Assembly: GCA_051294905.1 (NCBI GenBank) | Contig: CM119379.1 | Coordinates: forward strand, 22,382,001-22,446,000 | Direction of reading: 5' to 3' | Origin: Botryllus schlosseri | Lineage: Eukaryota | Length of the DNA: 64,000 bases | Shown: positions 9,182-16,042 of the stretch, in pieces | Position numbering within the stretch: position 1 is the first letter of the stretch | Layout of the letters: every line of letters starts with the position of its first letter | Notes under the pieces: generated by a model | What the model saw: the letters and a program-made list of their open reading frames with translations, nothing else | Database searches by the model: none | What the model was told of the DNA's origin: nothing | Translations under genes and position numbers: made by a program

Positions 9182-10782
9182 AGTGATTGATGATGAAGTC
9201 AGTTCTCAGTTCGGTAGATGCTGGTTACAGATATCTTGCGCGTTTTCAAGGTCTGCCGGAATCCCGAGTATGAAAGGGGTTTGACAGAATATTAATTACT
9301 GTACTAATCGGTGGCGGTAAAGATAAGACCTATCACATGATTAAGGTTTAAAGTGGTATTTTTCGACCGAGTTATATGCCGGTGTTGGGATAACTCGAGT
9401 AAAGTTATCTGAATGACTTGTCTCAGTTACGGCAATAAATGAAATGTGCGATGATTCGTGAGCCGGAGATAAATTTTCGAGTCATTTTTAGTTCATCAAA
9501 TATTCTACTTGACAAAGCCACGTGATGAATACTTTCCATGTTTACTGGATTCCGTTTACGTTTTCGATATGGTAAGTTCCATCAGCAACTCGGCTAGCCT
9601 TTACCTTTCATCATATAGGCATATACTCGCCTTCACTGGCATTCTAGCATAATATAACAACCATGGGACAGTCATGCAGGTGTTAGAACCAAAGTTGATT
9701 CTCTCTTGGCAATTTCGACCAAGTTTGGGTACAAACTTATGTTACATGCTCAAAAATTGTGTTTGCTGTGCAAAAATATGAGACCCTACTGAATTTTCAG
9801 CACATCAGTCAATAAACGATACTTATACCTCATAATCATCATGCATCATACATCATGATCAATTTACATGAATTACCGTGGTGACTCATATTGCGTTAGT
9901 AGTTTGGAATTGGCATGACACCAATTTTGAATATTATTGACATGTCAACGCACATTAAAATTAAACAACACAAACAGAAAATATGATTTCGATGAAATAA
10001 GCGTGACTGACTTGAAAAAATTTGCAAAGACCTGACTTTTAACTCTAGTAGAAATTTGCCACGATTCGAAATGACTTATAATTCTTACTCGAAATTAGCC
10101 ACTTGTAATCTGGATTGTTATCATGGTGAAGGGAAAACGGAAGGGCGCAGGATCTATCAATTAGCCTAGTTCCAAGATAATGGATGGTAGGCTATATAGC
10201 CAGAAGCTCGGTGTATTTACTGACAGGCAGTTAGGCAGTGTCGTAATCGATGGGAATTTGATATACTACTCCATTGAAGCCGTTTCAACTGTTCATTATA
10301 TTAAGCCTATTACTAAACACGCTTTTGTACTGACGCCGCTGTCTGATTAGCGAATCGAACTTATATCGGTGGCGAGCTTGAAAGCGTGGAAATCATTCAG
10401 GAATATAACATCTGTCGTTAGTTAATACAGAGTGCTAATGGAATTTAGAGGGGTGGATAAGTAGGTCAATTGGCGGTCATGAAAATTCTGAGCATCCTCT
10501 CGTGATTCCAAATAAATTAAATTTAAACAATAAAATAAGGTGCGTTCATACACGCTTAGTAGTTAGTAATCGTCATTTGAAGTTTGGCGAACTCCTGGCC
10601 ACCTAGTACACCTATAGGCCTACGCAGTGAATTATTAACAGTATTGTGGATTGAAGTATTTTGTGTTCGAGCATGCCGCTTTGTATACATCATGTCGATA
10701 CTGAAAGCGAACAAGTTGTTTAGATACCACTTCAGATCCTATTCGGTAGGCTACAGGTAACCTCTACCACACAAAAGGCGTT

Positions 10783-13700
10783 ATGGATCTCGACACCGAT
10801 TTGGACTTGAAACTCGATTATGATGATGATATCCTGCGGGGTGATGGAATGCTGAGTGAGGAGGTAAGCATGTGTCTCGTATGATTGCAATTCTACCTTC
10901 TAGAATCTATAGATGTCGATACGATTGCAATTCTGCATTTTGTAGTGAGGTAAAGTTACGCAGTCGGTCAATATTCAATGTTCATAGGCGAGACGATACA
11001 AATATGTGAGTTGCTGTAAGCTAAGCAAGCTCTTTTACAGCCAGTCGGGATTGTTCGTAATCCATGGATTATTTCTAATAGAATATCTATTTGAACACGC
11101 AGGGCTCCGCTAGTCGGGTACACACACAATCGAACTTCGTCTCCTCATACGAAAATAGCGAATTGGACTTGCGTCTTCAAGCGCAAGAGCATATGTATCG
11201 ACAAACGCTGATCAGGGAGAGAAATAAAGTCAGTCTGCATTCTTTGGAAGAAGTCGGCCGCTCAATAACAGCCATTTCTCAACGACGAAGACAGTACTTT
11301 TTGGATTACAAAACCTGTAACAGTATTCGACAAATCCGACAATGGTTCTCGTGGGAAACGAAGGTACGCACTCCGATTTTAGTGTGTTGCTCTCAGACTT
11401 TCACAATAAAAGTGAATAAAAATGTTTAGTCACATGTTCTCAACTGCATTAGCAATCACTTGTGGACAAAGCTAAGTAGGCCTACATATGTTTAGAATAT
11501 AGGATTGAGAGATGTAAATTTTGTAAATATTTTCGGAACACGTTTTCAGCTATTTTGTTTGCCATTATTTCTTATGGTTTTCATTAGCTGTCATTCGCGG
11601 CATTTCCATTTTCTATATAAGATCACACTCCATTCAAAATGTAACTGTACAGTACATACAGCCCACCGTTAGCATGTCCAAAATATTGTGAGATCTGCTC
11701 ACTGGAGCATTGACTTTAATTCGTAAATGAGAATTTTATGCTCCTACACTGCATTCAGATCGAGTCCTGGAGCCATCAACATGCCCAATCGACACTTGGT
11801 AATACGCTATGTTACTGTTGTGTATTAGTTTGGCATTAAGAAAGCACGTTTTTTTCATTTTCAAATAAAACAGTTCATGTTCTCATTCCGCCGCATTACG
11901 TGCTGGAAATCGCCAACCTCCAACATTATCCGCCAACAAAGTTTTGCTATTAAACTGATGCTATTGCTTATCTAATGCAGAGAAATCTCGACACTAATCA
12001 CGTAGCTGGGTCGAAGCCCGATAACGCTGCCACCCGGGGTCTGAAAAATTTCCTGAACAAAATCGATTTCTACCTCACGCTCATCACACGTTTCGGTGAA
12101 TATGTGATTGACACACTGTTAAGACATTACACTATAGAGTTGGAAAGTGACTACGAAGTGACAAAGACGAAGGAAAAGATGCTTGAGCTTCAGGTGAGTA
12201 AAACATTCTGTGACAATTGACAAGGTATAATTCACCTCTATACTATCCATTTCAGGAGAAATGTACAATCCTTTTGAGTGACAACAACGAAGTAGAGCTG
12301 GAAAGTCCTAATTACACGGAGGTCGAGTTGAAATTCCCTATCATTTCCATTTTACGGCAAGTTCACGATACTCTGTGCACTATGACCGATCTTTCAACGC
12401 TATGGAGGATGCACGCAAGGTAATACAACAACTGTGAATGTCTGGTGTTCACGGATGCCTTATTTTTGCCTTTTGATAAATTCATTCATTTTGCCCTTGA
12501 ATTCGTCATCTTCAAACATAGCGATAGTTTCGATCATACATTTTATGTCTGCTGGTTATTGGTCAAATTTAATATCTTTCCGGCCAGTTGAAAGTATCTC
12601 TTCCCCTACTTCTCTGAACCTTGACCCTCAATTTCCTTTCTTCCAGATATGCAGCCCGATATGAACACATAAATTACAAGCGATCGCGCCTGGCTTCGGT
12701 CGAAAGAATGGATGATAAAATGGAAGAGATCAAGAGTTTGGAAAGTCGCATAAGGTTGATTTTACTGACAAAGGGATGGTCATCATTAAGTTTTTCACTC
12801 ACAATATCTTTTTGATAAGGTTGAACAAATACGATATATCGGAGGTGGAAGGTGATTTGAAAGACAGAGAAGCGATGATGGCCTCAACTGAGTTTTGCGA
12901 AGTTTACAGTAAATGCACAGACCGCATTGAGGAGCTCTCCATCATCGCCGACGAAATGAAATTGGAAATCAAGTCGCTGGACACCACGATCAAATAGTAT
13001 GTATGTGCTATCATCGAATTCGGCCTTCATTCATTCGTTGTATTGGGCGATGCTTCGGACGATATCTCCCTGATCAATTCATCGAAGACAACAATTTTGA
13101 TGATCGATGTTTTATACACCAGCATTCTCTTGTCCGTTGAAAAGTCCTGATATTTATCTAGTCAGTTTTAGCGGCACCCGATTTTTATTACGTACAAGTA
13201 TCCAAGGCGCAACCAATTGACCACATGACAGTGTGTTAAATCGCTTCGATCACCTCGATACGTCTATTGATCATGATCATCTAGTTTTTTTTGTTCTATT
13301 TACAAAATCTGGTATACATACAAGATTGTAAAATTCTAAAAAATGAGTCAAGAGCAAATTAACGCAGTGAAAATTTGTGGCATATGGTATCATATCTGAC
13401 GGCTTTTTGCGGATCATCCCAGAAAATATATGGGATTTGTGCCAGCTTTAATGAGTATTTTAGCGAAAAGGTGGTTTTATACATAATGCACAATGATATC
13501 TAAAGGGAAATCCAATGGCTATCTATTTAAAGTCAGTCTTTACATCCCGAATTACCGTCCAACATATCAGCAAGTTCAATGAATTCGATTTCGCCAAATT
13601 GTTCGTTGCGAATTATGGATCGTTAGCCCATACTCTCGAATTAATACGAGTTTGTTGAATAATGTCGCTCATGCCCAGTTTACACGAAAAAGCGGAAAGT

Positions 13701-15657
13701 TTCAAGAAGGTACACCAACACAAACGAAAGCAAAAGCGAGACGAAAATTTGAGAAAGCGAGAAGAAAAATTGAAAGAGCTGGAAGCTATTGAAGGCGAAA
13801 TACGTCGCTTGGAAGTGAGTGCAATAATGATGCATCGGTATACCATGATAGGACAATGGCGAATGCTCACTTCAACCGATCATTATTTTGATTCCTTTAA
13901 CATATGTGTAGGAACACAAGACTATGTTGGATATGAAAGAAGAAACCTGGCTGCGGGGTGGATTCGAACAAGAGTTGGGAGTCATTCAAGACTTGAAAAA
14001 TCGACAAGACAAATTGAAAAAGATCGTGATAGACCTTCAACAGAGAAAAGAGCAAGGACACCAATTTTACCACGAAACGCGCGAAAAGGTGGAGTAAAGT
14101 TTGCTGTATGCGATCATGGGTAGGGTATATATAGTCCGGATTGGAATGATAGCCTATCAGCTCTGCGGAATTCAGGGCAGCATGATTGCTGATGAACAGT
14201 AGAAAAAGACTGGAATAAAAATAAGAAACCACCAGACTTCGCATCTCAATGACCAAGCGTACTTATTTGTTACTGCAGATTATGCACCTGGACTCCGAAT
14301 ACGAGCAACTCGACCGCGAGTACGAGTACGTCAAACGGCTCGCCGCGGCGATGCTCCCGATGTTATGGAAGACAGGCGCGTTCCAGCAACTTCCCATCAA
14401 TTCAGTGAAACCGAACCGAGTGAGCAATTTCGATATTTATTAACGGATCAGGCAGTGACAGTATTTGACTCTCGTCACGTTAAGGAAGAGGGATTGATAT
14501 ATACCTGATTTTCACATCATATAGGTTATACATTTTTACTATCGTTTTTCATTATACAACATCTTACCGGCCCAGTTTCGCTATATGTATGCTCCATAGG
14601 CCTATCGACCTTTCGCGTTATAGTTGGTTTTGGGGATCTAAGTTACCTTGTATCTATTCATTAGTCGGATGACTGAACCTTCTCAAATTACATTTAGATA
14701 TCTCACGATAAAGAAGCTGAGGAGCAAATCTATCCCATGACGCAACCGAAGGGAGTTGCCATGGTGATCAGCAACGACGAAGATATGCTGCATAAGCCAA
14801 GTTCGAGAAAGCTTGCCACGACAAGAGAGAGAATCACTCCTCTACCAGGCTCACACGTAACCCCTGTCGCTCCAGCTGGATCGCCAACAGAAAACAGCCT
14901 GCCTGCTCTAATCAATTGCTTCACCGCGCTGAGCGCACAGCTGGGATTTTACATCATGCCGCGTCGCCAGTTGACGAGTTCGGCTGTAAATCACAACCTG
15001 GCATCTCTTTCTGAGCAATACAGAGGGTTCGCCTGCGGCCTGAATTCGATAATGCTCTTTTTGTCGGCGAGGTCAGACGAATACGGTAGGCCGCTGGGCG
15101 CGGACGAGACAAAGTCACAGGCGTCCGTCGCTAGATACTTGAAACATTTCTCCCATTCCCAATGTCCGTCCTTGATAGGTAAGCCGAAAATATTCGTGCT
15201 GCTGCTGAGAGTTACAGTCCGTGACCCGAAAGCGCCTACTTTGAAAGGAACACAGAAAAAGAAGCCAGAATTATTTTCAAACGCTACTAAATCTGATTTA
15301 GCAACCAGTGTCTTCAAACCTGAAACCATAGACATATCCGAATTCGGAGAGGATATTCTTTTGATAAGAATCATGCACCAGAATGCAGGCGGGGTCGAAG
15401 CCGCGCCCACCTTCGGCGGTACTAACGTGTCTCACGCTGACAAACTACCGTGGTACCTTCAGATTCTGATTGGGGCGATGATGGAGCAATGTTGCTACAA
15501 AGACCTTCTATCCATACTCGGGTATGTGAAAGAAGAAATCGCTTTAGGACCAAAAGCGAGGGCGTCTCCGACTCCAAAAACCGATGTAGACGATGACGTT
15601 GAAATGTTCATCGATCACTCGCTCAAGAAAAAGCTTTATCTTATGCCTGGCATCTGA
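10783..15657 (+). CDS. Coiled-coil protein with C-terminal catalytically dead caspase-like domain (~805 aa)
   Basis: Ten exons with canonical AG/GT in continuous frame: 10783-10863, 11103-11363, 11981-12193, 12256-12419, 12647-12754, 12820-12996, 13679-13814, 13912-14088, 14279-14419, 14698-15657 (2418 nt including the stop). Exons 5-9 are E/K/R/L-rich heptad-like sequence. Exon 10 has caspase hallmarks YPM..PKGVAMVISN, LGF, F....CPSLIGKPKIF, PWYLQ.L, DLLSILGYV and SLKKKLYLMPG. The start ATG is the first plausible one; upstream exons are not excluded. Confidence 0.85.
14698..15657 (+). CDS. Terminal exon encoding a complete pseudo-caspase domain (p20 + linker + p10)
   Basis: Acceptor CATTTAG at 14691-14697 lies 39 nt upstream of, and in frame with, ORF 14737..15657. 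The LSHG position reads LSAR (15061-15072) and the QACRG position reads LLLRV (~15199-15213). Confidence 0.88.
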   Translation: MSHDKEAEEQIYPMTQPKGVAMVISNDEDMLHKPSSRKLATTRERITPLPGSHVTPVAPAGSPTENSLPALINCFTALSAQLGFYIMPRRQLTSSAVNHNLASLSEQYRGFACGLNSIMLFLSARSDEYGRPLGADETKSQASVARYLKHFSHSQCPSLIGKPKIFVLLLRVTVRDPKAPTLKGTQKKKPELFSNATKSDLATSVFKPETIDISEFGEDILLIRIMHQNAGGVEAAPTFGGTNVSHADKLPWYLQILIGAMMEQCCYKDLLSILGYVKEEIALGPKARASPTPKTDVDDDVEMFIDHSLKKKLYLMPGI

Positions 15658-16042
15658 TCCGTCCACGTGGGCTATACGTCATTAATCAATCAAAGTATAG
15701 ATTGATGATAATGATATGGAATGGAAGGATTTAGCCTGTTATTCATGTTGTATATGTACGTGAGGTACGTAGAGGTCTTTGTAAAATGTATTAGAGCCTA
15801 TCTATGAATATACGCAGATTTCGCGGTGACTGTAATAGATATTTCTTTGCAATCAATCAGCGCGGCGAAGCATAATTGGTGCTGTCAGCAACGATGATAC
15901 GTGATGCTGGTACAAGCATGCCTTACCCAAGTATACCGTTAAAATCTCAGATAAAATTGCCTTGCCGATGTGGGCAATCTCATAAATTATGTGCAAATAC
16001 TTGAGATCGTCTTTTATGGAGTTGGTCAGTTTTTGGTGTATA

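Follow-up and report, generated by a model that had tools for sequence, protein, structure and literature searches.

We analysed a 64,000-nucleotide stretch of the Botryllus schlosseri genome (contig CM119379.1; hereafter the window, whose own numbering is used throughout) and found that positions 10783 to 15657 of its + strand hold one expressed gene of ten exons, encoding a protein of 805 residues. The N-terminal ∼485 residues are helical and comprise a family-specific domain (approximately residues 45–245) followed by a coiled coil (approximately residues 246–470). The C-terminal part, encoded by the tenth exon, is predicted to adopt a caspase fold from which, as judged by alignment with other caspases, both catalytic residues have disappeared. 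Sequence comparison places the protein in a conserved family of tunicates and amphioxus. We found no published account of this family of pseudo-caspases with a prodomain other than the death fold, which public databases represent only by uncharacterized predictions.

A ten-exon gene joined by spliced RNA

A first-pass annotation of this DNA, made from the letters alone, had proposed that an open reading frame (ORF) resembling a stand-alone gene is linked, through an in-frame acceptor at 14697, to nine upstream exons, giving a product of ∼805 residues. That ORF (14737..15657; 306 residues) is present on the + strand, and because its frame stays open in the 5′ direction as far as the AG acceptor at 14696–14697, the start of exon 10 was placed at 14698. 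The RNA evidence consisted of two RNA-library contig sets (X1 and X2) and two raw RNA-sequencing runs from the same organism, with contigs and reads aligned on positions 10200–16000 and exon ends given after the stated cut-offset correction. All nine joints were present in these data (contigs of X1 and X2; raw reads of X22), and 9/9 are bordered by GT..AG. When spliced, the exons form an ORF of 2418 nucleotides (805 codons and a stop, with no internal stops), and an in-frame stop lies 33 nucleotides upstream of the ATG at 10783. The joints and the reading frame therefore both agree with the proposed product.

The joint between exons 9 and 10 (14419/14698), which the annotation had singled out for a check against RNA, is crossed by spliced contigs of both X1 and X2. 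A single 920-nucleotide contig holds exons 8, 9 and 10 together with the exon 7–8 joint, a 494-nucleotide contig holds exons 3–5 plus the exon 5–6 joint, and the other joints are carried by overlapping contigs. The longest linkage is by such overlap, with no single contig covering all ten exons. RNA depth in run X1 is greater on exon 10 than on the upstream exons. Transcripts beginning inside exon 10 had been named beforehand as a sign against the joined gene; no cluster of read starts was seen there among the RNA reads on 10200–16000.

Exon 1 (10783..10863) carries the start codon, encodes an acidic and poorly conserved N-terminal tail (residues 1–27) and ends at a GT donor. Its joint, 10863/11103, appears in all three of X1, X2 and X22, and the 5′ untranslated region extends back to at least 10648, as shown by a contig of X1 over 10648–10864. 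Exon 2 (11103..11363; residues 28–114), exons 3 and 4 of the helical N-terminal domain (11981..12193 and 12256..12419; together residues 115–239) and exons 5 to 9 of the E/K-rich coiled-coil region (12647..12754, 12820..12996, 13679..13814, 13912..14088 and 14279..14419; together residues 240–486) all have their joints in the RNA data. Exon 10 (14698..15657) encodes the caspase-fold pseudo-protease domain (residues 487–805) and the stop codon, and the 3′ untranslated region extends past 16000. All of these features lie on the + strand.

The ATG at 10783 is uncertain as the true translation start, because the acidic stretch formed by the first ∼45 residues lacks a counterpart in the aligned Ciona and Clavelina proteins; the next in-frame methionine is at position 10849 (residue 23). 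Just before 10837, within exon 1, four raw X22 reads carry a loose end resembling a template-switch oligo, and some complementary DNAs may start within exon 1, 3′ of the ATG.

A caspase fold without its catalytic pair

A caspase scaffold had been recognized by eye in the C-terminal ∼320 residues, and profile, model and structure comparisons agree with that assignment at a level that chance does not explain. The exon 10 translation (319 residues) matches the Pfam family PF00656 (Peptidase_C14) with 29.5 bits (E 7.3e-07), above the gathering cut-off of 21.4, and its relatives reach scores of 93 bits; the best solved relatives by sequence are caspase-3 and caspase-8. An AlphaFold2 model of exon 10, built on an alignment of 40 sequences, has a predicted local distance difference test score (pLDDT) of 78, a predicted template modelling (TM) score of 0.78, and a caspase-like order of strands and helices. 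Foldseek comparison of this model with the PDB gave 384 matches at E ≤ 0.001, and among the 50 matches listed all 50 were caspases or c-FLIP. The top match is the protease-like domain of c-FLIP(L) (3h13; E 2.6e-13; TM-score by target 0.86). Caspase-8 is on a par with it by E-value, and c-FLIP(L) and caspases-8, -9 and -3 all lie at about 1e-13. We conclude that exon 10 is predicted to encode an alpha/beta caspase fold, with the central six-stranded sheet visible in the model.

Each of the motifs that had been quoted for this domain (YPM, PKG, VISN, LGF, CPSLIGKPKIF, WYLQ, SLKKKLYL, LSAR and LLLRV) is present. The loss of the catalytic dyad, described in the annotation as a change of LSHG to LSAR and of QACRG to LLLRV, was likewise recovered in the 40-sequence alignment. 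Arg611 (15070..15072; local sequence LSARS) occupies the column of the catalytic His of SHG, and LLLRV (15199..15213) stands in the place of QACRG, with an alignment gap in the Cys column. As aligned, the exon 10 domain has lost both the catalytic His and the catalytic Cys, and the protein cannot act as a caspase-type protease.

The region that supplies the P1-binding Arg in active caspases is replaced by a Pro/Ser/Thr-rich insert following beta-1 (14797–14880; exon-10 residues 34–61), which is modelled as disordered (pLDDT <50) and is longer in the subclade of the window protein than in Ciona, Clavelina and amphioxus. The sequence PTFGG (15406..15420), in the loop equivalent to substrate-groove loop L3, is invariant in seven divergent tunicate members and is modelled at low confidence. 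The C-terminal strand, HSLKKKLYLMPGI (15616..15654), ranks with the most highly conserved segments of the domain; in active caspases the last beta strand forms the dimer interface. No second caspase-like sequence was found inside the 64-kb window.

A tunicate and amphioxus family with its own N-terminal region

The annotation had described the prodomain as ∼485 residues of helical sequence with an E/K-rich coiled coil and no death fold, and amino acid composition, heptad scan and modelling concur. Exon 2, which aligns with proteins of Ciona, Clavelina and amphioxus, contains the motif QAQEH.YRQTL...EEVGRS..AI.QRRRQYFLDYK.CN....RQW..WETK, and exons 3–4 contain FP(V/I)IS...W R.H. Residues 246–470 of the window protein consist of 44% D/E/K/R and 3% P+G and give a heptad signal in a crude scan. 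The N-terminus was modelled on residues 1–462 of the Ciona orthologue, with exons of the window and of related loci among the alignment rows. The resulting model (pLDDT 82) is wholly helical, including the part that matches exons 3–4, and comprises five helices of 18–34 residues, one short helix, and then five helices of 40–71 residues.

Neither sequence nor structure searches connected this region with a recognized family. Pfam returned nothing at E ≤ 1 for eight N-terminal exon translations except noise (COX2_TM and DUF349), with no DED, CARD or Death match at that threshold. In five full-length relatives there was again no DED, CARD or Death match (E ≤ 0.1), the only hits being Peptidase_C14 and sub-threshold coiled-coil noise. 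Comparison of the N-terminal model with the PDB by Foldseek gave generic long helices only (best E 6e-3), as did the ESM Atlas structure search, and the best of the Swiss-Prot models was the Rad50 coiled coil (E 9e-4), also a generic long-helix match. VIA-align against 48,161 chains reached a best Z of 12.5, the bar for helical models being ∼13. The structural matches to the coiled coil are thus non-specific (TM <0.4, Z <13), and no death-fold match to the model, PYD included, was found in the PDB, PDB wide, Swiss-Prot or Atlas searches. When exon 2 and amphioxus residues 35–255 served as queries for feature searches of the ESM Atlas, no match exceeded 0.68. Word-indexed searches of limited sensitivity (8000 and 597 candidates scored), using the N-terminal profile and amphioxus residues 35–255, returned family members only, with no protein from a vertebrate or another phylum.

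Related genes repeat the whole arrangement. A search with the exon 10 translation gave four gene calls of one ORF each, at 74, 73, 50 and 33% identity, and the contigs of two such loci carry the upstream exons in the same order. In the nearer locus (L001), exons 2–10 are collinear (71–91% identity), with 78–91% amino acid identity for exons 2–9 where they align cleanly, 80% for exon 2 and 71% for exon 10. In the more distant one (L003/L005), most exons are collinear (23–68%), with 68% identity for exon 2, 40–54% for exons 3, 4, 8 and 9, and 33% for the caspase exon, so that conservation in L003 is highest in exon 2. Selection was assessed against L001. The proportion of nonsynonymous differences (pN) is 0.13 in the N-terminal half and 0.15 in the caspase half, and that of synonymous differences (pS) is ∼0.8, a saturated value that precludes expressing dN/dS as a ratio. 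Because pN is far below the saturated pS, both halves appear to be under strong purifying selection.

An exhaustive profile search over 1.84 billion representatives led to annotated full-length relatives, namely Clavelina lepadiformis LOC143465426 (742 residues), Branchiostoma LOC109476238 (770 residues) and LOC118404675 (761 residues), and a second amphioxus paralogue, LOC109476237 (722 residues); a search with the N-terminal profile added Ciona intestinalis LOC104265773 (751 residues). BLASTP aligned residues 43–805 of the window protein with LOC104265773 and LOC143465426 at 37% identity each and with LOC118404675 at 26%. The shared order is a helical domain (QAQEH.YRQ...QRRRQY...W.WETK; FPV.S...WR.H), a coiled coil, and a caspase-like domain ending in L.KKLY..PG. 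The Ciona, Clavelina and Branchiostoma entries all have this three-part collinear architecture, and the tunicate ones share the dead motifs as well; the window protein differs from them in its extra acidic N-terminal tail and in the longer disordered insert after beta-1. A hidden Markov model of the N-terminus matches every family member and nothing else among 172 proteins compared. By these alignments the protein belongs to a conserved family of tunicates and amphioxus, the same fusion recurring in two further loci and in annotated proteins of three genera. Clavelina lepadiformis has three family loci (LOC143465426, LOC143465427 and LOC143465308) on one 20-Mb record. Some Clavelina isoforms (651 residues) do not have the exon-2-type N-terminal motif, and there may be alternative N-termini within the family.

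The database labels of these relatives are ‘uncharacterized’ or ‘Caspase family p20 domain-containing’. The annotation's remark that no protein of this architecture had been described is supported as regards the literature searched, in which we found no description of a coiled-coil pseudo-caspase family, including by locus names; it is not right as regards NCBI and UniProt, where the same architecture exists in the Ciona, Clavelina and Branchiostoma proteins that carry the label uncharacterized. A census of Ciona caspases from 2024 counts 13 genes, with Ci-caspase 8/10 as the sole DED caspase, and does not mention cFLIP; the family described here is missing from it. Ci-caspase Y of that census was considered as a family member and rejected as a different sequence. 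A paper on amphioxus caspases includes seven ‘unknown’ caspases and does not describe this architecture.

The distribution of the catalytic residues within the family bears on how they were lost. Both His and Cys are absent from 10/10 tunicate sequences in the 40-sequence alignment, and all tunicate members compared share L(L/F)L(R/K/H)V(T/S) as the replacement. In amphioxus, one paralogue (A) has AHG and QTC aligned with the His and Cys of zebrafish caspase-3, and the other (B) has lost both. The two genes are tandem neighbours, and one Branchiostoma belcheri gene model fuses B and then A. In a tree of 110 caspase domains, built by a quick maximum-likelihood method, the tunicates form a clade with a Shimodaira–Hasegawa-like approximate likelihood-ratio test (SH-aLRT) value of 99, and tunicates plus amphioxus A a clade with a value of 93. 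Paralogue B falls elsewhere, on a very long branch, and is placed in the family by its N-terminus. The weakly supported neighbours of the family are assorted invertebrate proteins of the CED-3-like and caspase-2-like kinds. Amphioxus A, the least diverged member, has its best PDB sequence matches in caspase-3, caspase-9 and CED-3. The simplest reading of these data is that there were two separate losses of catalysis, one on the tunicate stem and the other in amphioxus B. The ancestor of the family was probably a caspase whose platform was helical or a coiled coil rather than a death fold.

Among seven divergent tunicates, the best conserved segments of the domain are beta-1 (QPKGVA), beta-4 with the loop that formerly held the Cys (GKPKIF.LLLRVT), PTFGG, and the C-terminal strand (L.KKLY..PG). 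This pattern of conservation indicates that the former active-site region was remodelled and then frozen, not decayed.

The annelid Owenia fusiformis has a 932-residue protein (CAH1776205) with a long helical N-terminus, segments that by eye are hydrophobic and transmembrane-looking, and a C-terminal caspase-like domain. In that domain TQG takes the place of SHG (Gln for His), and QRC keeps the Cys. Over the p20 part the protein shares 37% identity with amphioxus A, and in the tree it is the sister of the family (SH-aLRT 87); profile comparison of its N-terminus with those of the family gave a weak match (probability 6.5%).

Likeness to cFLIP and a proposed scaffold role

The first-pass annotation had called the protein cFLIP-like, and the structural part of that description holds: as in cFLIP(L) (CFLAR), the C-terminal caspase fold is without the catalytic Cys and His, and 3h13 is its top structural match. 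A further resemblance is the position of the dead amphioxus paralogue in tandem with one that keeps the His-Cys pair; the vertebrate CASP8 and CFLAR genes adjoin each other, and the B/A tandem recalls that arrangement. Kinship with cFLIP is not supported. The least diverged member is closest in sequence to caspase-3, caspase-9 and CED-3, the family lies among assorted invertebrate caspases in the tree, and neither the PDB sequence matches nor the weakly supported tree gave any sign of affinity with the caspase-8/10 lineage. Because the family is no closer by sequence to caspase-8/cFLIP than to caspase-3/-9, its loss of catalysis appears to be independent of that of cFLIP. Moreover, cFLIP has two N-terminal DEDs, whereas none was detected in the window protein with its ∼485-residue helical and coiled-coil prodomain, and the family, unlike cFLIP, was found only in tunicates and amphioxus. 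Sequence comparison thus favours analogy over orthology as the nature of the likeness to cFLIP, and by that analogy cFLIP(L) would be the nearest functional analogue.

The death-fold initiator caspases (caspase-2, -8, -9 and -10, CED-3 and Dronc) likewise have a long N-terminal region followed by a p20/p10 domain, and the amphioxus member, like them, keeps the His-Cys pair. Their prodomain is a six-helix CARD or DED, whereas that of the present family is a family-specific helical domain with a coiled coil. CARD9/CARMA proteins acting with the MALT1 paracaspase follow a similar logic, in which a caspase-fold domain is presented by an oligomer built on a coiled coil. In that system one protein supplies the coiled coil and another the caspase-like domain, the two being connected via CARD and BCL10; the window protein, in contrast, has both on one chain, with no detectable CARD. 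It also differs from MALT1 in that its domain scores as a caspase-type Peptidase_C14 and has caspases as its nearest solved relatives.

The annotation had proposed a scaffold or decoy that regulates or anchors an active caspase. We consider it fairly probable, for the scaffold reading as a whole, that the window protein serves as a scaffold without catalytic activity. Its N-terminal domain and coiled coil would assemble or localize the protein, and the dead caspase domain would serve as a binding module. Its interface strand might pair with an active caspase protomer, by analogy with cFLIP(L), or a ligand might be held in the remodelled groove of the former active site (LLLRVT and PTFGG); both modes of binding fit, because the interface strand and the former active-site loops are conserved. 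Within the scaffold reading, the chances of a caspase partner and of some other partner are roughly even.

Several observations weigh against this reading. The catalytic state is taken from alignment columns. In amphioxus A, QTCME stands in the place of QACxG and no SWR/GSWF motif can be recognized, so that an ancestral Asp-directed activity is not assured. Searches with the N-terminal and caspase profiles found no active tunicate paralogue with the same N-terminus, leaving no evident candidate for a dedicated partner caspase with a coiled coil. Finally, the AlphaFold2 monomer model of the Ciona orthologue folds the long helices back on themselves, so these helices may form a bundle within one chain instead of a dimerizer; the model fits a dimeric coiled coil or such a bundle and cannot tell one from the other.

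A pseudo-caspase might instead have been repurposed as a binding module outside caspase control, for example in a structural or trafficking coiled-coil protein (such as a cytoskeletal or ciliary one) that binds a non-caspase ligand in the remodelled groove. We regard this as possible, if doubtful. The retention of the former active-site loops in a new form would suit such a history, as would the stronger conservation of the exon 2 domain than of the caspase domain in L003, the failure of the profile searches to find an active paralogue with this N-terminus in tunicates, and structural neighbours of the N-terminus that are generic rods (SMC, Rad50 and axonemal proteins). Those rod matches, however, are the non-specific ones noted above, the strand at the dimer interface is caspase-like as well as highly conserved, and the His-Cys pair of the amphioxus member ties the origin of the family to proteolysis.

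Persistence of protease activity through other residues or another nucleophile is very improbable. Cys642, in the RCPSL-type motif (C156 in exon 10), is invariant in a five-sequence alignment and occurs in the amphioxus A members too, and the caspase domain is strongly constrained. Yet ordinary caspases also conserve this Cys and do not use it as the nucleophile, all ten tunicate sequences have replacements in both catalytic columns, with the Cys column deleted, and the P1-binding Arg region has given way to a disordered insert. That the locus is an artefact (read-through or mis-assembly uniting two adjacent genes, or a pseudogene in decay) is scarcely credible: the incomplete span of any one contig and the greater X1 depth on exon 10 would allow it, but nine observed joints in overlapping contigs of one frame, an exon order repeated at two further loci and in annotated full-length proteins from three genera, a pN far below pS in both halves, and the lack of a read-start cluster inside exon 10 all speak against it.

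Beyond the scaffold role of the window protein itself, a broader history can be sketched, which we rate as rather unlikely. An old caspase lineage, at least as old as the chordate stem and possibly bilaterian, would have been recruited or activated via a helical coiled-coil platform, with the tunicate members as pseudo-proteases in the regulatory role of cFLIP, and with an N-terminal module perhaps shared with invertebrate proteins whose C-terminus is a Death domain. In a Foldseek search of AlphaFold DB clusters, the N-terminal model had best matches at E 8e-8 to 1e-4 with TM ≤ 0.36. The matched proteins are 446–951 residues long and mostly uncharacterized (including V4B687, A0A6J8E6W1, C3ZPJ3, A0A6P4Z1N5, A0A7D9D759 and R7VL93), and from their accessions we take them to be coral, amphioxus, annelid, sea-urchin and mollusc proteins; two of the cluster matches are named ‘Death domain-containing protein’. 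These model-based matches could reflect homology or mere coiled-coil likeness. On the former view, the same helical module may have been joined to different cell-death domains, and if the broader history is true, the N-terminal module would be a new adaptor module of cell-death signalling.

To our knowledge, the initiator-type caspases so far described from animals rely on death-fold domains for their recruitment, and pseudo-caspases other than cFLIP and caspase-12 have been little studied. Conserved, expressed and subject to selection among the nearest invertebrate relatives of the vertebrates, the family described here carries the caspase fold on a different platform. Its His-Cys form (amphioxus A) and its dead forms (tunicates and amphioxus B) provide a natural before-and-after series for the passage from protease to pseudo-enzyme. 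In Ciona, a tractable system with a well-studied, caspase-dependent regression of the tail, the family also supplies a candidate regulator of apoptosis.

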